64,000 bases of DNA from Oikopleura dioica (Eukaryota > Animalia > Chordata): assembly GCA_907165135.1 (NCBI GenBank), contig OU015567.1, forward strand, positions 3,348,001-3,412,000, read 5' to 3'. How positions within the stretch are numbered: position 1 is the first letter of the stretch; each line of letters starts with the position of its first letter. A model generated the notes under the pieces. That model did not search any database and was not told where the DNA came from. It worked only from the letters and a program-made list of their open reading frames with translations. The position numbers were made by a program, and so were the translations under genes. Positions 24,900 through 37,738 of this stretch are shown here, piece after piece.

Positions 24900-26000
24900 A
24901 GACGTCGTTTTTCTTGATTTTCAGGGCTTCTTCCGGTGCTGTTCTGTGCGTTTGCTTTTGGTAAAAACTGAATAAAATTAAGTGTAGATTAATTCAAAGA
25001 AAAGTTCATTTCCGTTCCTGTGTTTCTAACCGGCTCATCCAAGCAGCCATATCCGGTTGAGAAAGGACCGCTAAAAAGTCATCTAATAAAAATTTACAAA
25101 AATAATAATCAAAACCGAAATTATCAGAAGCTTTTCGTCTTCTTCTCCCGATCCTTCTTCCGTCAAGTGGAGCCTAAGAATGATGGAAAAAGGGATGAAA
25201 AATTGAAATTACCGGGAAATGTGTCTTTTCCGAAACTTTGACTCCCGATGGCTCGATGTTCACAAAGGGGCCCTTATCAAACACAGTCAGCTTCAAATTG
25301 CCTAAAACGAGAGAAAAAAGTACTTTTCGTCTTGTATCTCGCTCTCCGTCGTCCTTAAAAATCGGCTCTCCTCCGCCACCAAGATCGCTAGAACATGATT
25401 CCTCATTCCCTTCTTTATATCAAATTACCTCTTGAGAATCGGATGACAATCTTCTCCATTCAGTTTTCGTAAAAATTGCTCGTTAGATTTGCAAAACGGC
25501 CGAGTGTAATTTGGATTTCCGGAGCCGCTAGAATCAAATTAAAACCTCTCTGACAATCTATTCACGAAGAAAACCTTCCCCAAGGATGAAAAACCGGGTT
25601 AGTTCTTCTTCGATATTCCTTGCTCTCGCTGCGGCGCTGGATTTTCGCGTCCATTAGTCGTTTATTTTCTTCAACCGAATATCAAGGCTATTATTTTTGT
25701 AAGGTTACCTTCAAGAAGGTGGAGACCGAGGGAAACTTGATAAGGAGTTTTCTCCATATTATTCAAAGCTCTCCACTGTCGCTGCGTCACAAGCTTGCCA
25801 TCATGAAATCGAGGGGCTCCGTGCCCACTTGGGTCCAAATTAAAAGGGTAGATCGTCGGTCTCGTCTTATACTCTATTATTTGCTGAAAGAAGTCAACTT
25901 ATACCTTGGCAATCAAGGGGCAGTAACTATTATCCATTTTCAGCTCAAAAAATATTCATTAAAATTTTCTTTCTATAATCAAATTTGCTCTTGTCAATTG
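24900..26000 (-). CDS. Probable multi-exon gene, unknown product; boundaries approximate
   Basis: Spliceable pieces LKMDNSYCPLIAK|TRPTIYPFNLDPSGHGAPRFHDGKLVTQRQW...LHLLE| and NLKLTVFDKGPLCEHRAIG (weakly C2-like). Confidence 0.35.
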
Positions 26001-26153
26001 CTTATTGAAAAGGGGCGGTCCTATTTTGCGATCAGAAACTGAATACTACTCGACAAAAGAGCAAGTTCTATTACAAGGTAATCAAGCTTCATTTTCATGT
26101 ATTATTTTGAAAAGGACAGATAACATTTATTTTCGATATTAAATAACGTTTTT

Positions 26154-27280
26154 TTAGTTCAGCAAAGATCTGATATTGGTGATCTCTTTTTCTACATAGT
26201 CTTCGACATCTGCAGTCTTGACGGGCGTTGTTTCTGCTAATTGATACCACTTTTCAACTTTTTCGACTCCGCACTAGAAAAATGATGATGATCGCGTCCT
26301 TCTGAAAATCTAACCTTCCAGAAAAGATCGCACTCGAGATCCTTTTGAACCTTTCCGTCTTGAATGGTCTCCTTGAGTTCACAATCAAGAGTGAGCAAGG
26401 TACAGTTCTCTTCCTTTGGCGTAAGATTGAAATTTTCTGGCTTGGATTCACTAAATAAGGATGAACACAAGCATATCTGTTCGGTCTTACCATTTATCGA
26501 AGCCATGGTACTCGCCGTTGATTTTTACCATTTCAGCCCAGCAATTATCCGTTTCAAAGCTTTTGATTTTGCTCACTAGAAATCATAATCGTTGTTTTTA
26601 TGCAAATACTTACAGTCAAACAGCTGAATAGAGTCCTAAGAAATGGGTTCTAAGACCTGGTAAATAAGGAAATTTGAATAAAATAACGGATAAAAGTTAT
26701 CGAACCCTTCCTTAGAATATCCAGCATAATTGGTCATCTCGCCCGGTTGAATTTTGGTGATAGATTTGAGTCGTTTGTTGTTATTGTTGAAAACTCCAAG
26801 TGCCCAGTTTGAGTTGGAAGGTAATTCGGAGCGTTCAACCTCGCGAGATTTAATGACGTGTTTTTGGGAGTCATGGAGGAGTTTGATGTTGATGTATTTC
26901 ACCACTCTTTCATCCCTTAAATCATGAACAAAAATGAATGCAAGTGATATTGCAAACCAGAATTGCATTCCAAATCCTAAATTTCCATCTTTTCCCTCTC
27001 GTAATTTCTCTTCTGATGGAGGTTCAGTTACAGTCATCATTTCTAAAATAGCCTCATGAAAAGGTCTTGTGTCATGGATACAGTATCGAAAAAGCATACC
27101 TCCAGTTTCATCATTAAAAGCAATTTGAACTTGAGGCTCAAAATCGTCAGGCTGCATTGCAGAACACCCATCCGCTTCGCCAGAACATTGAGAGCAAGCC
27201 AAAATAGTCTCTAAAAATGACGTTTCCGATCGAAAATAAAAAAGATTCAAACCGTGTAAAAACAAGTAAAAAATTTTCAT
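26154..27280 (-). CDS. Multi-exon gene of unknown function; 5' end probably further upstream (~27700)
   Basis: 214-aa ORF with ACSQCSGEADGC; further exons QICLCSSLFSESKP...CDLFWKVRF and terminal ETTPVKTADVEDYVEKEITNIRSLLN* (stop 26154-26156). Confidence 0.5.
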
Positions 27281-28077
27281 CTTTGTTGTTCAAAACAAGC
27301 CTCGAAATGACGCTTTAGAGAAGAGCGGATACATATGTATTTCCTACAAACAATGAGCACACTAATAATTGATGGTCAAATCGTCAGAATTTCTTATTAT
27401 GAATTTTTTCGTTTTCCAAGCCACGATTCATTTCATTCATGATAACTCGCCCGTTTCTTTTGATCCCATCTTTCAGCGTTCTTATTTCGTCATCGTTATC
27501 ATTTTTCCTTCAAGTACCTTCTTACTTATCGTCATGCCCGGCGGCTGCTTCTACCGCATAGAACTTGAACGAATAACGAATCAGCATGCATACAATAATT
27601 TTTATGAAAAATGTTCCTTTCCATGTTTATCTTCCTAGAGAATCTCAATCTCAAGTTCTGCTGTGAAGTTCGCTTCTGACTTAGCCTTTGGGTTAATCGA
27701 TAGAAAGGGGGAATTTCCCGCGCGGTCACTCTGCGGTCATCGGCGGTCGAGCGAGCCGAGAGTTTCACTTTTCATTTTTTTTCTTTCAAAGAGAAAACTG
27801 CGAAAATCAGAGAAAATTCTTGTTTTCAATCTGTCGACTGCAATATAAATAATTTTCTGAAAGACGTTTTCTTTGAATTATAGGAGAGAAAAAAAAACGA
27901 AAGACAGACAGAAAATGTCTAAATTTATTCAGTATGCGAGCGCAGTCAGCTATAAATTATTAAATTTTTCTATTTACACTTGCAAGAATCAGCGGTTATT
28001 CATGGGATCCCCTCGACTTGAACAGTTTTTCCGGGACGAAAAAAAAAGAGAAAGATTTTAACTTGAACCGTTTCAGA

Positions 28078-28648
28078 ATGTCACAGAAAGATAGACTTTC
28101 CGCTGCTTACGAAGATGTTCGAACAGACGACTCAAATACCTGCTGGTTAGTCCATGAGAATTTCTCTTCATTGCCTTCCTTTTTTCTCGGTCCACAGCTT
28201 CTGATCCTATTTTCAGGGCGACATTCAGCAGTTCTGCTAAGGGGGTGAGCCCAGAAGCCTCCGGTGACAAGCTCGAAGATCTCATGAAGCAGTTCACAGG
28301 TAGACAAACTTATCATCCCCTCTTTATTCCTCTCTCTAGACTCGAATGTTCTCTTCGCTTTCTTCCGACTTACGACTGGAGACGCTCTGTCTGTCAGAAC
28401 AAAGTTTGCCTTCATGACTTGGATCGGAGAAAAAGGCTCGCCGATGTCAAAGGCCCGGGCGGGCCCGAACAAGCGCGTTATTCAACAAGTCATCACGGTA
28501 TGTTTTTTTATATGTGTTATTCTTTGAGCCATACTTCTAGAACTTTGCCTGGGAAGGAACTTTCTCTGAACTGAAAGAACTGGACCTGAAAGCGATCGAA
28601 ACCGAAGTGCGCCGAGCTGGTGGGGCCAATTACGACGCCCAAGCTTAG
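28078..28648 (+). CDS. COTL1: Coactosin-like protein (ADF-H domain)
   Basis: Spliced product MSQKDRLSAAYEDVRTDDSNTCWATF...LFAFFRLTTGDALSVRTKFAFMTWIGE...KARAG...NFA...EVRRAGGANYDAQA*, matching coactosin hallmarks; 3 GT-AG introns. Confidence 0.95.
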
Positions 28649-29873
28649 AAAAAAAAACAGTCACCATCCTTCAACCCCGAATCAAACCGAGCCTGAATGA
28701 TAATCATTACCAGATTTATTATCACTTTATCTATTTTTTCTTTAGCCTTTTCAACATTTGCAAAATTTGAAATAACTCCAAATAGGACACAATTTTTTCT
28801 TTATCTTCACAAGTTATTCTGTTACAGCGTCTTTCAGAAGAATCAAATGAATAAAACAATAAAATTTCAAATTTGACTTTACCAGTGAAAGAAATCGAGG
28901 AAATTGATCAGCGACAGGAATGCTTCTTTCATCTTTTCAACTGAAAATTTTTTACTTACTCATTTATTTTACATTTAATTGCATTTTCTAGGCGAGTTAG
29001 CGAAGTGACACCCTTAGTAAATCGCTCGAAGAGAGAGTCTAACTTTAACAATTGGGAATTCTATCCATCTGAGCGTCGAAATAAGGGTATCACCAGGCTA
29101 TTTTCGTTGAAAAACTGACCGATTTCCGCGGCGATCTCTTTGCTAAATTCCCTTGTCGCGAAAATAATGACATCCGATTTCGAATCGAGCTCCTCAGGAT
29201 CGTCATTTTCGTCTGGCCTTGAATCGAAAAAGAGATCATCCTCCTTTGGCTTCAGATTTCCTATCTCGATCTACCGGTTTTGACATCAATAACAAGGTGT
29301 AAGCGCTTATTACCTCGAGGATTTCTTTATCGTCATCTTGAATCTCATAATTGTCAAAATAATCGCCCGAATATTGAGTCTTACAAAAATCAAGGAAGAA
29401 AAGTAACAAAATCGCTTTCATTTTCAATTTTTTTTTCATGGAAAGAAATTTTTGGCTTGAGTGCGTTTTCTGAAGAGCACTTGCTGTGTTGCTTGAGAAT
29501 TTTTGCAGTGTTTGATAAGAGTATTCTTCGTCAAAAGATGAGCAAATTTAAACTTGTCCGACTTGATCAAAATTGCATTTCAAGAACTCTTTTGGCTACA
29601 TGGTTTCAATGAAAAAGCATACTGGCGCATAAATTAGTCTTTTGAAAAGCTGTCAAATAAATGCTTTCATCGTTAATTGCACTGTCGGAAAATAGGCGAT
29701 TTTCGATTTATGTCTTTATTTTTCAATAAAAGTAGAGGCAGAAAGAAATCAGTCTCTTTTACTTGCGGCAGGGTTGATGAATTACGACTGGTTGAATTTC
29801 AATGTTCAAAAAAGGGGTGCAAGAAATTCTGAGGAAAATGATTTTCCTAGAAGTCCGAAGAGGGGAAAATTTA

Positions 29874-30512
<639 letters not shown>

Positions 30513-31020
30513 TTACTGAAATTATTAAATCACAAAAATTTCTCAAAGCGGTAAGAAAAAACGGTTACCGGACGGGACTAAAAATTTAATCCTACTATCC
30601 TTACTAAAAAACAAACTCAGGAAAAATCGCATCTAGAAGATTTTAGAAGGAAAATAAGAGCGCCAAAATTGCTATGAAGGTGTATTTTCTTTCCAAAATC
30701 TTCTAGATCATCTAGAATTCGGGATATAATCGGGTATATTTTTGAGCAAAAATAACAACAGTAACCCTTTGGTGACATGAGTTCTATCGCAAAATATGCC
30801 TTTATTGCCTAAGAATAATGAAAATAATGAAAACAGATTTCCCGAAGAATTAATGACAATGTACATATATCGACGAAAAAAAGTCGTTTCGCCCTTTATT
30901 CATTCATATTTATTCTAATAAATCAATTAGAATCAGATCATTTTAATCTAGCGCCACCGAGGACGATATATACCCCTGATCGGTAGATTTTTGCTGCTAA
31001 AAAGAGAATATCAAAAAATC

Positions 31021-31263
31021 ATGAATATTTTTGCATTTCTTGTTGCTTTTTCAACAACAGGTAAGATTAAAAAGACTCAGGATGAAAGCAGACAAAAATA
31101 TATCCAGAAAATAAAAACTTGACTGTGGAATGTATTTATCCTCTTACAATCGTCTTTCTTAGGAAAATGCAGTCGCATTGAAAAAAGATCGGGACTAGCT
31201 GATCTTGTTTACATGGGGGAACTTCACGATCGAATTAATAACTTCTTCGGTAAGCCAAAATGA
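31021..31263 (+). CDS. Small secreted peptide precursor 1 (candidate amidated neuropeptide/hormone)
   Basis: Exon 31021-31060 + intron 31061-31162 + exon to TGA 31263: MNIFAFLVAFSTTGKCSRIE-KR-SGLADLVYMGELHDRINNFF-GK-PK*. Confidence 0.72.
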
Positions 31264-31870
31264 AATATCATCAATGATCAATTGCCAATTGTATCATGAA
31301 TCATGATTCAGATTCTAGCGCTCTAAAATTCGGAAATTTTTATGAAATTTGCCGATTAATTTCACAATTTTTAGCTTATTTATTTTGGAAAGCAAAATTT
31401 TTAAATAAAAAATAAAACTTTGAAAATGAAAATTTAAGCATTGAAAAAGAGGCTTCATCAAAAGTATAAAAACCGGCAAAAAAGAGAAAGGTTCGTCCAA
31501 AAGCTTCGCCGTCCGCGGTTATAAAGACACTGGAACATACAATGAGCTCAAAAACAGCATAATCGCGTTTATAAAATCGCACAAGATCTTAGAGCAATTT
31601 AGAGAAGTCCCGAAATCCTGGCAAACGGAACGACTTTGAAGTGAATTTTTATTGATTTTTATTTTACTGTCTTCTTTCTTTTCAAAATTCTATCGGAATA
31701 AAAAATTAAAATCAGTTGTCGAGTTCTTTTTCGTTCAATTAGTTATTCTAAGTAAATCTTTTCTTGATGGCACAATCAGTCATTTCTAATGATTTAATGA
31801 TTTTAATGATGTTATAAAAAGAAGTGCCAAAGTTTGAGGAAGACGAAAACAGAGCACTGCTAAGATAAAA

Positions 31871-32078
31871 ATGAATATTTTTTCTTTTATAATTACATTA
31901 TCGACAACAGGTAACAATTCCTAAAAACAAAGAAAAAAAACTATGTCCACTTATTTTTCTCATGTGATTGAAACCTTATTAAAAGGAAGATGCTTTCCTT
32001 TTGAAAAGAGCCCAGCTTATTGATCTTGTTCACATGGGGGAAATGTTTGATGCACTCAATAGTTTCTATGGTAAGTGA
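31871..32078 (+). CDS. Small secreted peptide precursor 2 (paralog of 31021 gene)
   Basis: 40-nt first exon MNIFSFIITLSTT with the same phase-1 intron; with acceptor at 31989 reads DAFLL-KR-AQLIDLVHMGEMFDALNSFY-GK*. Confidence 0.65.
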
Positions 32079-33181
32079 GAAAAACTACTCTTTGCTTGCT
32101 TAACACTTCAGATTTCAAATACAGACTTTTGCAAGAGTACAAAAAACAACAAAAAGAGAAATTGCGATCAAAACCTTTGTGAAAATTCACTGGCATTGTC
32201 AATAAAACAGAAAATTCTATAAAAGAAAAATATAGAGATAAACTTTTGTAATGAACAAATTCCGTTATGAGGAAGGAAAATTGCTCTTCAAGCAATTTTC
32301 AGTGATCTTCCAAGGACGAGGCTCGGGGTCCTCCGGGCCCTCGCGCGACAATCTTAGCTCGCGCTCCGTGGCGCCTCTTTTCGGGGGGTCCTGCAGGACT
32401 CTGCTAATTTTCGACGCTTTTCGCGCCGATCTTTTCTACCCCCACTATGACTTTTTCTAACGATTTATATGGCCTTTAGAAAACTTAATAAATATGTCCG
32501 ATATATCATTCGAATCCATAAGTCACGAGCTAATCAGTGAAATAAAAATTATGAATAAAAACCTTGTTTTGCTAAATAATATTTTTACTATAAACAGTAC
32601 TCCCTCATTTCTGAGTTAAAATAATATCATTTTCTCATTGTATCCTTTCTACTAACCTGAAGTTACAGTAGCTTTCGATCCAAAAATAAAAATGTGCGTA
32701 TCGAGTCGATCTGGTTTCTGCGTTTGCGGGGTGAATTCAAGCTCTTCCTCGGTGCTGCCCTTGCCGTTACGCTTGTTCGAGCTGATGATTGGCCAGGGCA
32801 GCTAATTGCGTGGGTGCTCGGGCTACTTTCGGCTCGGGAACGGACTCGAGAAGCGAGGGAAACGAAGCTGCCAAACCGCCCACGCCGCTCTAACTTCGGC
32901 AACGAGCACGGCCGTAGCTAACGAGGCGAGGAGGGGGTCTGCAGGAATCCCCCGCGCGGCGAGCCCTGGGCTTACAAGGCGAACATGTTTTATAGAAAAA
33001 TATCAAAAGAATTATGCGAATGAATGAAATAAACTCAATTGCGCTATTTTTTCGGTTTAGCTTTTCAAAAGCCAATTCGAATTCCATTGGAAGATATCGT
33101 TTATTATCGATAAGTTGATAGCGAACACTCTGCAAAAGCTGACAGTGATAAGAAGGAAAGACAGATAAACCGTGATGAACT

Positions 33182-34295
33182 TCATATCCAGTTTCTCTCC
33201 TCTGCTTCTTGAACATCTACTCTCTGTTGTTTGATGGATTCTATTGAGCTTTCGGAGTAAATCGGCGTCACTTCTTTCAGCAAATTCTGCTGATCACTTG
33301 GAGTGGAGCCTTTTCTGTAGCTCTCCTTATTTATCAGTTATTTTTGTTGCATGAAATCGACTTACCTCCTCTTCTTCCGGTGCGTTTTTAACTCTTGTAA
33401 TGCCCTCGACAAGCAGCAAGACCATGTTGATCGTTGCTAGAATTCCGACGGGCAAGGCGATGTAAAAACATGTTCCCTGGCGAAACTTGAAATCATCGCT
33501 GGAAAAAACCGCTCCTCCTCCACTGCTGGATCTTCTGCTTATTGAGTGGGAGGGATAAGAAGGCATAGGAACTGCAACTTGGGAGTCAAAGTACAGTTCG
33601 CGCTCGTATTCGTCAGAAACGACGTCGGATAAAAGACCTTTTGAAAGGCATAAATATCAAAGAAATGAAAAAATTGAATCCTCATCGTCGGTCGATGATG
33701 GGCTTGCTTTGTCTTATTTATGCTCTTTCCTATCATCATCCACCAGAAAACAATTCCAAAGAGCGCAATAATGCCCCCAGCTAGAACTAACCACGCTTTT
33801 GTCTTTTCGTTTTCCAGTATTTTCAAATATTGTCCTCCGTAAAATGAAAGAGTCCAACTAAGAAAAATAATCAAAAATGGCCAACTAACAACAATAATCA
33901 AAAACAGCCAACTGAAACCCTCACCTGATCCAAATAAAAGTCGCAGAAAGAACTGAACAAAGCTGAAGCCCTTGAATCGATTTCATCGAAAAGTGCCCGT
34001 TGAAGGAATAATACGCGCATTGCCACTGAGATTCCATTCTTGTGAGGCATTGAGTCCAGAAACCTTTGAAAACTCGAACATCCCCGAGAAGGGATGAGCT
34101 TTCATGTAAATCCGTCTCGACCCAATATGGAAAAACTATCAACAATGCCATACCAATCGCGGCCAAAAGCCCCAGCAGCGAGTTGAACGCCCAAAAAGAC
34201 GAGAACTCATCTTCATCTTCTTCTTCGTCGTACTCTGTCGAGTAGTTTGGGTTAATGATATTCTCCGAAGAATGCGATTTCGCGCGATTTGACAT
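33182..34295 (-). CDS. Claudin/PMP22-superfamily tetraspan protein
   Basis: TM1 (FNSLLGLLAAIGMALLIVFPYW), signature GFWTQC...WQC in ECL1, TM2-3, TM4 preceded by FRQGTCFYIAL, cytoplasmic tail ending ERNWI*. Confidence 0.8.
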
Positions 34296-34566
34296 TTTCT
34301 CTGATGCAAAATGCTCGCCGCGTTTACGAGCGCGTTTAGCGAACGCAAACAATAACGGAAATCATTTGCAAATATAATATTTGCATTTTTTCGTGGTTTT
34401 CTAGCGCTGACCATTCATCGATAATGCTGCTCGATTTCTTCTTATCATCCAATTTAGAGTAAAAATTTAGGTTTGCACTTGTTTATTAATGATATTTATT
34501 GCACAGAAAATGAATATATTTAGATTTTAAAATGATAATAGCCTAAAATTCATGCCTCTTTTTCGA

Positions 34567-36007
34567 TTATTTCTTCAGAAGAGGTTGTGTCTGGCTGCTT
34601 TCTTTCGGTTTCTTGAACGCGAAATACGAGTAGACCAAACTTCCAGCGACGGAGATATTGATTCCCATAAAATTGAGCATTGAAAATTGATAGTCGTGTC
34701 CAAACACCATTCCGAAATAGGTGACGAACAGGTTTTTCATGCATCCGACTACAGTGGTTGTCAAACTGCTGTTGTTTTGCGTGCAAAGGATGATGGAGTA
34801 CATGAGGATGAAGCCCATAAAGCAGGATGCGAAGAATTGAATGATGAACATTGGATTGTTCCATTCCGAGAAAGAAGAGACTTTTTCGAAATCGCCCTTT
34901 GAGAAGGAGATCAGGAGCACCAGAGGAAGACTAAAAATGAATGGTGATTTCAATGAAAATTTGAAGAAAAATGGATCATCAAAATTCTTTGAGCGCGAAA
35001 AATCGCGGCAAAAGTGTGAAAAAAATTTCCCTCACATTTCGCCTAGCAAGAAATAGTCTTTCGAAAATACCTGCAAAGAGAGTTGTAATACATCAGTCCA
35101 TATTTCCCCAAGTCCTTTCCGTTCAATTTCTTCTTCGTGAAAACACCATAAGAAGCCGTGAAAAAATCATTCAAGAGAATAAAGCAATAAGCAGCCAGGT
35201 CAAAAGCGAGATCATCAAGAGCAGCAACGAGGGCTCCACCAATCATGATGGCGATGGCGATGATGATTGGTCGTCTGGCCTCGTTTTTGAGGATGAACCA
35301 CTCGAGAATCATCGTCATGAGGATCGAAAATCGTCGGAGAACCGTGAACATTGGCAGTGACAAGCTCTAGAATAGAGGCTGAAAAGAGGGAGAGCTAAGA
35401 GAAAATGAGTACCTGTGTGGACATAAGGCCGAAAATCATATTTGCCAGGTATAATAGCGGCAGTGGAAAGATTTCCTTTACAACTTTTATTGAATGATCT
35501 GGAAAGTCGATCTGAAATATAAGTTGTTATTATCAAGTAAATTAAAAAAAAATCTGACCTTTTTGATGAGTTTGAGAAATGACAGGACGATGATAGCTGC
35601 TGTCATTTGGCCGCATCCGAGCAGCTCGGGAGATGGGAACGAGTAGATTGAGAGGACGGATTTGTTAACAAACACGATGAGAATAGAGCTATTTCGAGGA
35701 TGAGAATATTTCCTCGTGGAAAAAAAGTTCTTTTATTGGAAGAATTTCCGCTTTGTTCAACCTTTTCCTGATAGCATAAAAAAGGGCAGAGCCAATTTTC
35801 GCGCTTGTTGAAGGACTTTCTTTTTGGTCAACACAAATTTAATTCGCTTTTGCTTATCAATGATAAAAGCCTGAAACAAGATAAGGCCCTCGTAAAAGTT
35901 CGCATCTAATTGATAAAATTTAACCATAAACTTTCATTTTCTGACTCTATCTCTAAAAGATGCTCATTCTCTGAGTCAATTTCGGAGTCTGAATTTCTAT
36001 CTCTCAT
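34567..36007 (-). CDS. SLC35D: UDP-sugar transporter, SLC35D1/D2 (fringe-connection)-like
   Basis: ALFYAISSILIVFVNKSVL, SLPMFTVLRRFSILMT, LNDFFTASYGVFTKKKL..DLGKYGLMYYNSL, CTQNNSSLTTTVVGCMKN, GINISVAGSLVYSY; start at 36007 is a by-eye estimate. Confidence 0.9.
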
Positions 36008-36841
36008 TTTTTATGATGAAAATAGCCAAGAAAATTCAAGAAACTCTTGAATTCAATTCTGAAATTTGAACGAACTCAAAATAAAATGACATTGTCGGAT
36101 CCGGGTTTTGACTAGACACAGATTATTGAATCAAGGAGCTATTGTTCTATTTTTTTTAGTTTTCACTTTATTGGACATTACTTGGAAAAAAGTATTCTGA
36201 AAAAAAGTTCCTGAAGATCCATTTTGCTATTTTAGCAATAAATCTTCAAAGAACCCTCAAGAGCCACCGTGAAAATATCGCCACCGCTTTCTTGCCAAAT
36301 TTCCATTTTAATCCTATTATCACTTTCTATTATCATTTCTGACCAAGTTCCTTTTATGAAGTTCCTCCATTTTGATTAGTTTTTATTCAGAGTTTTCGTT
36401 CAACAAAATTTCATCAGTTTTTTCTCTTTCTTTTCAGTTTTGGGTTGTGTTTGTATTCTCAATCGTTAAATCGGAAAAAGTCTCGTAAAATGAGCCCGCT
36501 TGTTTCCGCGAAAAAGAGCTTTAAAAAGTTGACAATTTTGAAATATTGAAATTTGATTATGATGAGAAACGAAGGGTTGAGAGCGCTAGAACAGAAATCT
36601 AAACGTGCCTGCCTCGTGAAAATACCACCAGACGAATCCGCCTCCGGGCAGTAGTGAGATACTTTATCAGTGTTTCGCTGCGCCGGTGCACCGGGGATTT
36701 TGATTTAGAGCGGCAGATACCACTGGATTAGGTACGTTACACACTTCCGAATGAATGAAGTATCCTTCGATAAAAAAATAGCTGTCATTGCCGAATCTTT
36801 CTTTTCAAATAAAAACTTTGAAAAATCACTTTTTGAATAAT

Positions 36842-37126
36842 TTATTTGATCTCAACTTTGAATGAGAGCTTGTGGTCCTTCAAGAAGACAATCTCATGAG
36901 CCAAGCTTACAGCCAAAACAGACAAATATACAGTCACAAAGACGATGGCCATGCCAATGAAGCATCGAATCGTGTGGAAGAGGATAAAGGAGAAGAGGAG
37001 ATCGTGCCAGAATCGTTTCAGTCGAAGGGATTTGATCACATTCTCGGTTTCTCGGGCGAGTTCGTAGAGGACGAGCAGGAGGAATAAAGCACCGACGATG
37101 ATGTTTTTCACCTTAAAATTATTCAA
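36842..37126 (-). CDS. Exon of a small hydrophobic membrane protein, unknown
   Basis: 94-aa ORF with several hydrophobic segments; no family recognised. Confidence 0.35.
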   Translation of the reverse strand: MNNFKVKNIIVGALFLLLVLYELARETENVIKSLRLKRFWHDLLFSFILFHTIRCFIGMAIVFVTVYLSVLAVSLAHEIVFLKDHKLSFKVEIK

Positions 37127-37738
37127 TAAGGAGAAAAATGACCACAGCTAAAAACTTTCAAAGATAGTTTTGAGCCAATTTTTGTTAAGAAAAAATTGAA
37201 GTAAGCGCTCATATACGCCCAAATTAAAAAATGTCCATTTTTTTGACTTTTACCTGAGCAAGAACAGCTTTCATCAACCCTCTTTCTTCACAAAAACTTC
37301 CGGTTTTCTTCGATTTTTTTACTCTCTCTCTCTCTTCTGATTCTTAGCAATTCACTCTAACTCATTATAAAAATCTCAAAACGCGTAAAATCGTGCTCGA
37401 TCTGACTTGGCGCTAAAAAGTCAAATAAAAATTATTTCTACTACGGCTTGGAACGCTGCCAGCGTGAGTTTCAAATGAACCCACGCAGAGTGTTCACAGG
37501 GCGGGCCAGTGTTCCGGTTCACCGATTTTGGTTCAATTCTAATCTGATCGCGCCCTTTTTTCGTAAACTTTTTTCACCTTGCTTGGATCGATCTACTTTT
37601 CAAGGTTGAAAGGGATGAAAAAATCGGAATCCGTCTGAGCTCAGAACAAAGACTTTCTCGGTGAATTGATTCTTACAATCAATGGAGATCATAAACACGC
37701 AATGATAACAGTTAAAGGAAAAAAGTTTTATTAAAAAA

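Follow-up and report, generated by a model that had tools for sequence, protein, structure and literature searches.

Two small neighbouring genes with three exons each

Do two tiny neighbouring genes of the larvacean Oikopleura dioica encode a signalling peptide, and in which form would it be released? Both lie in a window of 64,000 nt (contig OU015567.1, positions 3,348,001 to 3,412,000), and a sequence-only reading had proposed them as an undescribed tandem pair of two-exon genes, each encoding an amidated 20-residue peptide between a Lys-Arg (KR) and a Gly-Lys (GK) site. Our analysis indicates that they probably encode an unnamed secreted signalling peptide. Judged by sequence comparison, gene 1 is a real, strongly conserved and unnamed candidate peptide-precursor gene with a young, divergent duplicate (gene 2), and the amidated two-exon reading is wrong.

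Much of the proposed framework was confirmed: the start codons at 31021 and 31871, the 40-nt hydrophobic first exons with phase-1 GT donors (31060|61 and 31910|11), the acceptors at 31162 and 31989, and a KR followed by a 20-mer in each gene, with 10 of the 20 residues identical. The paralogy is real, as the exon 2 peptides reach a similarity score of 68, compared with a mean of 15.7 for shuffled sequences and none of 20,000 shuffles at 68; a third copy of the peptide gene was not found in the window. Sequence divergence outside the peptides holds for the intron interiors, which are no closer than shuffles, but not for the 170 nt of 5′ flank, which are still alike (0 of 1000 shuffles). The products remain small, probably secreted precursors in which KR is conserved and the peptide, itself strongly conserved, fits no recognised family.

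The two-exon structure had to be given up, because both genes contain a second phase-1 intron and a homologous third exon (Table 1). For this search every downstream AG was tried as acceptor in each gene, and the chosen pair (exons starting at 31439 and 32112) was the best among all stop-to-stop pairs, with a score of 39 (137 of 20,000 shuffles) and acceptors in register in the DNA alignment. Nor is gene 1 undescribed. The NCBI locus record of O. dioica OKI2018_I69 chr2, identical to window positions 25021–37524, carries a 70-aa hypothetical model with exactly these three exons (g4812.t1, CAG5110403.1, UniRef100_A0ABN7SYK4), which equals the product of gene 1 as assembled letter for letter. 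This unnamed protein probably ends downstream of a one-base frameshift and misses a conserved tail. Gene 2 is absent from the NCBI annotation of the locus.

Table 1. Features of the two peptide genes and of the adjoining histone H3 gene (window positions).
Feature	Position	Strand	Description
Gene 1 exon 1	31021..31060	+	hydrophobic leader of 13 residues, putatively a signal peptide; phase-1 donor; 9/13 residues invariant across the three lineages
Gene 1 intron 1	31061..31162	+	102 nt, GT-AG; the two other lineages have 41 and 40 nt
Gene 1 exon 2	31163..31249	+	short pro-piece with conserved GKC; KR 31183-31188; first 20 peptide residues 31189-31248
Gene 1 intron 2	31250..31438	+	189 nt; donor G|GTAAG is the earlier "Gly-Lys"; acceptor AAATTTAAG, unchanged across the three lineages
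Gene 1 exon 3, as annotated	31439..31524	+	peptide residues 21 and 22 (to 31443), followed by the KKR site (31444-31452), a basic spacer and the stop
A-run of gene 1	31478..31483	+	six A (five in gene 2); annotated frame departs here from the frame conserved elsewhere
Gene 1 conserved C-terminal coding segment	31511..31639	+	out of frame in the assembly; AATAAA at 31697
Gene 2 exon 1	31871..31910	+	hydrophobic leader, phase-1 donor
Gene 2 exon 2	31990..32070	+	shifted acceptor 31989; KR 32004-32009; 20-mer 32010-32069
Gene 2 intron 2	32071..32111	+	41 nt, GTAAGT...TTCAG; retention would read Gly-Lys-stop
Gene 2 exon 3	32112..32182	+	KKR site changed to KYR; in-frame TGA 32180-32182 precedes decayed tail copy 32183-32248; AATAAA 32201
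Histone H3 gene, intron-containing	29911..30506	-	head to head with gene 1, ~515 nt apart; synteny anchor, outside the peptide system

The apparent Gly-Lys signal is a splice donor

In both genes intron 2 begins in phase 1 inside the codons that had been read as GK (31249|50, GTAAGC, in gene 1 and 32070|71, GTAAGT, in gene 2). The G|GTAAG is letter-identical in all four genes compared (the two Okinawa genes and those of two other lineages), though synonymous change within the peptide has reached saturation (pS 0.97). Across the donor, identity between lineages drops from 0.70–0.90 to 0.33–0.40, none of the six positions after GK is shared among lineages, and reading on in gene 1 gives GKPK, GKFTPF and GKSAKSGQS in the three lineages, with no conserved processing site. 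In the two other lineages all four splice sites are preserved and exon 3 is open, with products of 88 and 84 aa, and intron 2 of gene 1 measures 189, 254 and 89 nt in the three lineages. Because the read-through is not conserved while donor, acceptor and exon 3 are, GGTAAG is best read as a splice donor, both in the NCBI model and in the other lineages, and not as an amidation signal.

In prohormone processing, a convertase cut is followed by carboxypeptidase E, and PAM acts only on an exposed Gly. The spliced products read F-[A/D]-L-K across the former GK position, with no Gly before a basic cleavage site or the chain end. Amidation of the gene 1 product is unsupported by these comparisons, and a non-amidated peptide of 22 residues, of no recognised family, is the likely product. 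The sequence-only reading had named splicing at GGTAAG into a longer, unrelated protein as grounds against amidation; such splicing is what the NCBI model and the two other lineages indicate, but the longer product is not unrelated. Exon 3 supplies a second basic site, KKR or KRR, two residues after the 20-mer, so that a peptide is still predicted, as a free-acid 22-mer.

The only surviving version of the amidated 20-mers would be retention of intron 2 in gene 2, which we regard as very improbable. The read-through of gene 2 is exactly G-K-stop, and its exon 3 has lost the KKR site; but this stop comes from the donor consensus GTAAGT plus GA, and the identical donors, the homologous third exons and the unshared read-throughs of gene 1 all stand against it.

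Gene 1 is conserved among three lineages

A metagenome scan with exact look-ups yielded orthologues of gene 1 in two lineages (contigs L002/L003/L005–L007 and L004/L008/L009), which are ~79–80% identical to each other in DNA. Three lineages are described for O. dioica, with the Okinawa split at ~25 Mya (PMC11067885), and by sequence our orthologue groups fit these lineages. The histone H3 gene adjoins gene 1 head to head in Okinawa, L002/L003 and L009; a synteny route through the neighbour g4808 found no orthologue.

Over the three lineages, 18 of 20 peptide residues are invariant, compared with 9/13 in the leader, 3/7 in the pro-piece (G-K-C), 4/12 at the start of exon 3 (including L-K-x-R) and 9/28 in the tail. 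Between Okinawa and L002 the peptide shows pN 0.10 and pS 0.97, and between L002 and L004 it has no non-synonymous and six synonymous changes. KR and L-K-[K/R]-R are kept in all three gene 1 lineages, and conservation peaks between them, which marks out a peptide of 22 residues with Leu at its C-terminus. This 22-mer is net acidic, and its second half is moderately amphipathic. A frameshift in the pro-piece of gene 1, which would liken it to that of gene 2, was rejected, as both other lineages keep the GKC frame.

Downstream of the annotated stop, the frames of the lineages part. A tail in window 31511–31606 has 14 of 32 residues identical to L002 (dN 0.37, dS 1.21; 0 of 20,000 shuffles) and lies in a frame that differs from the annotated end. 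With one A fewer at 31478–31483 the frames join, the local codons match gene 2 and a 108-residue precursor results. To judge from these alignments, a homopolymer assembly error is the simplest account of the out-of-frame tail, and a real frameshift at the same A-run is possible. We rank a small extra intron in exon 3 (e.g., 31464–31503) below a one-base error, since splicing it out would delete residues that gene 1 has in common with gene 2 and the orthologues. At the very end of the tail, the codons of L009:1065–1087 and L002:1125–1148 are offset by one base (three contigs), indicating that the extreme C-terminus is not constrained.

Gene 2 is a recent and divergent duplicate

Gene 2 is seen only in Okinawa; in L002/L003/L006 and in L008/L009 the interval from gene 1 to the downstream element lacks it. 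Where gene 2 and gene 1 share a residue, 20 of 24 codons are identical, compared with 16/34 and 14/31 between gene 1 and its orthologues. The silent sites of gene 2 are thus nearer to gene 1 than those of gene 1 are to its orthologues, which places the duplication after the Okinawa split. Of the assignable amino-acid changes, 12 of 13 fall on the gene 2 branch (p=0.003). This would fit a tandem duplicate that then changed fast, through relaxed selection or a new role.

The peptide of gene 2 is in frame as had been proposed, via acceptor 31989, but this requires an acceptor 4 nt downstream of the position homologous to gene 1 (31985), which frameshifts before the peptide. That gene 2 is a decaying pseudogene and not a second hormone gene is a real possibility, to which we give somewhat less than even weight. 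With the homologous acceptor, the A-run before KR is 2 nt short; GKC and the KKR site are lost, a premature TGA stops the frame before the decayed tail, and the excess of amino-acid changes is 12:1. On the other hand, all splice sites, the ATG, KR and the poly(A) signal remain, the in-frame acceptor exists 4 nt on, and the two missing nucleotides might in turn reflect an assembly error in a homopolymer. Over 44 codons against gene 1, dN is 0.31 and dS 0.98 (dN/dS ~0.3), which also speaks against decay.

The peptide has no recognised relatives

Relatives of the two genes were sought in several collections. A search of 5.8 billion proteins, which sees targets of 0.55–1.75× query length that share 5-mers with the query, returned only g4812 itself. 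Among 1.84 billion representative proteins there was no relative besides g4812; a second match there (P0002, a 761-aa bacterial leucine-rich-repeat protein) was rejected as chance. Neither single sequences nor profiles matched Pfam or PDB at E up to 10, in searches whose HMMER filters drop weak matches, and the tails had no Pfam match, including to the motilin-associated domain. The ESM Atlas gave no usable feature match and, by structure, only generic helices; viral and bacterial collections gave none. No homologue outside O. dioica was thus found in proteins, Pfam, PDB or the Atlas. For gene 2, L002, L009 and the frame-shifted gene 1, the exons of the spliced models were used one at a time as queries, and the sole full-length query was the NCBI model g4812.t1, alone or aligned with exon pieces.

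PDF and cerebrin precursors end with a Gly-basic amidation signal. The suggested resemblance to their layout is reduced to a KR followed by a roughly 20-residue peptide, since our precursors continue for 28–66 residues past the "GK", which is a splice donor, and have no Pfam match. Motilin/ghrelin was rejected as a candidate, as a pro-piece and KR intervene after the putative signal and neither a profile match nor a motilin-associated domain in the tails was found; resemblances to secretoneurin, CRH and NPY had no profile match and were dropped. The Ciona CiNTLP, CiLF and CiYFV/L precursors (PMC8936170, Table S1) are alike in their signal peptide (putative here), KR-type sites, lineage-restricted sequence and non-amidated hydrophobic C-terminus. 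They differ in carrying several 5–12-mers, in contrast to the single-copy 22-mer here, and by eye none of the 18 Ciona peptides listed in that table has any sequence likeness.

A candidate prohormone for a free-acid 22-mer

We think it rather probable that gene 1 is a three-exon prohormone-type gene for a free-acid 22-mer neuropeptide or hormone, with gene 2 as a later tandem duplicate. As expected of a convertase precursor, its paired basic sites flank the most conserved segment, and the second site is lost in gene 2. With its hydrophobic leader of 13–14 residues the chain would enter the secretory pathway, a convertase of the PC1/3, PC2 or furin type would cut after KR and after K-[K/R]-R, and a carboxypeptidase would trim the basic residues. 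Given established prohormone processing and these sites, one would expect an acidic peptide of 22 residues, partly an amphipathic helix, that ends in a free Leu and is not amidated. Its calculated monoisotopic mass is 2494.23 Da in Okinawa and 2580.28 Da in the L002 lineage, compared with 2309.13 Da for the amidated 20-mer proposed before. It may act as a neuropeptide or hormone, most likely through a GPCR, and the less conserved C-terminal helix may be an associated peptide or a second product. It is the layout and the conservation pattern that point to a signalling function.

Several observations stand against the prohormone reading. The leader is short and has no charged n-region, although its hydropathy peaks at ~3 (Kyte-Doolittle) at the N-terminus only (residues 1–12). 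The lone conserved Cys in GKC follows the leader, and a plain pro-piece would not need a Cys. The first mature residue varies (S, N, A), and in a single-sequence AlphaFold model a helix (residues 24–65) runs continuously through the KKR site. Gene 1 could instead encode a small secreted or membrane-anchored helical protein, such as a house, gland or organelle component, in which the conserved segment would be a binding helix, the basic residues incidental and the Cys a dimer bond or lipid carrier. The predicted continuous helix, the conserved GKC, the unusually conserved leader and the purifying selection on the tail would suit such a protein, as would the head-to-head arrangement with histone H3 in three lineages despite heavy genome scrambling in O. 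dioica (PMC11067885). We nevertheless judge it unlikely, because conservation is boxed exactly by two convertase-type sites and the Pfam, Atlas or PDB relative expected of a housekeeping protein is missing.

The best lead to a known family is PTH/PTHrP. A divergent PTH-family ligand, cut only at the first KR, would be a helical peptide of 33–40 residues activating a PTH-receptor-like class B GPCR, which we hold to be unlikely. As in pth genes (PMC4354418), a putative signal, a short pro-piece and KR follow one another and an intron lies just ahead of KR, a generic feature; a long helix is predicted. Mature residues 12–31 of L002 share nine of 20 ungapped identities with PTHrP 8–27 (PMC10238420), a count made by eye, after many families had been considered and without a valid E-value. 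These identities include L-H-D and R20, which PMC3009671 lists among the conserved features. Two PTHR-like genes are present in Ciona (PMC3483286), and PTH-like peptides are predicted in tunicates according to work cited in PMC4354418. The same comparison, however, needs a 4-residue N-terminal offset, and the other sequences have fewer identities: 8/20 for L009, 5/20 for gene 1 of Okinawa and 4/20 for gene 2. By eye, two lineages have L-H-D followed by D-L-x-R-R, as in PTH, PTHrP and PTH-L, but M/L-H-D/N is expected at mature positions 8–10 (PMC3009671) and L-H-D stands at 12–14 in gene 1, with M-F-D in gene 2. Hydrophobic residues that bind the receptor are lacking; V2, Q6, L24 and L28 are absent, and with the offset only R20 is present, in two of three lineages by eye (PMC3009671). 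Furthermore, the would-be mature peptide is interrupted by an intron, conservation falls off steeply past residue 22, where the receptor-binding half of PTH would lie, and Pfam and PDB gave no match in the searches above. From these comparisons we would not file gene 1 as a PTH-family member. Our literature search found no paper on a PTHR-type class B GPCR in O. dioica. Mirabeau and Joly 2013 and On et al. 2015 reportedly give PTH-like sequences of tunicates and amphioxus. In a more speculative combination, to which we attach a small probability, gene 1 would encode a ligand of a larvacean PTH-receptor-like class B GPCR, too divergent for profiles and cut to the N-terminal 22 residues, and gene 2, the young Okinawa duplicate, would have taken on a new role as a ligand, possibly an amidated one if its 41-nt intron is retained, and differing between cryptic species.

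Observations in the neighbourhood

Several further features accompany the locus. A gene 1 copy in L004:1–570 and L008:1–400, compared with L009:780–830, is 98–99% identical to L009 from the first peptide codons on; in these two independent samples unrelated DNA replaces the promoter, exon 1 and KR, with a 98-codon ORF and, in L008, short CGGCACGATC repeats. The copy may be an allele or a duplicate truncated at its 5′ end, with the break precisely at the KR site. Palindromic TGACG/CGTCA (CRE-like) half-sites lie ~60–70 nt upstream of the ATG in both non-Okinawa lineages (L002:516–528, L009:630–642) and in neither Okinawa gene. Intron 2 of L002 (755–1008; 254 nt, compared with 89 nt in L009) carries a hairpin-like insert in which CGAAGCTTCG is repeated and which may be a small mobile element.

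Directly downstream of the peptide locus is a G+C-rich element (window 32300–32990; L002:1270–1698; L009:1200–1900), single-copy in the window and weakly similar by tblastx in three lineages, which might be an old insertion or a conserved non-coding element. Beyond H3, an annotated 106-aa gene of four exons (window 28879–29421, minus strand) starts like a signal peptide, contains an acidic segment and has no Pfam match; it could encode another small secreted protein of unknown kind. The first intron of H3 (29911–30506; L009:1–320; L002:1–112) lies at the same codons in Okinawa and L009, with differing lengths, and is apparently absent in L002/L003.

Implications for larvacean peptide signalling

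A full-text literature search for Oikopleura neuropeptide precursors and GPCRs found no paper devoted to larvacean peptide signalling, a field that is almost uncharted. The locus also holds a trap for readers of sequence, as a phase-1 donor G|GTAAG always translates as Gly-Lys, and two annotations can be corrected: the probable frameshift in g4812 and the unannotated paralogue, gene 2. In one of the fastest-evolving animals, a peptide with 18 of 20 residues invariant across ~25 million years (PMC11067885) stands out. The predicted 22-mer would be a concrete ligand to test on the orphan GPCRs of O. dioica, with a mass defined for peptidomics.
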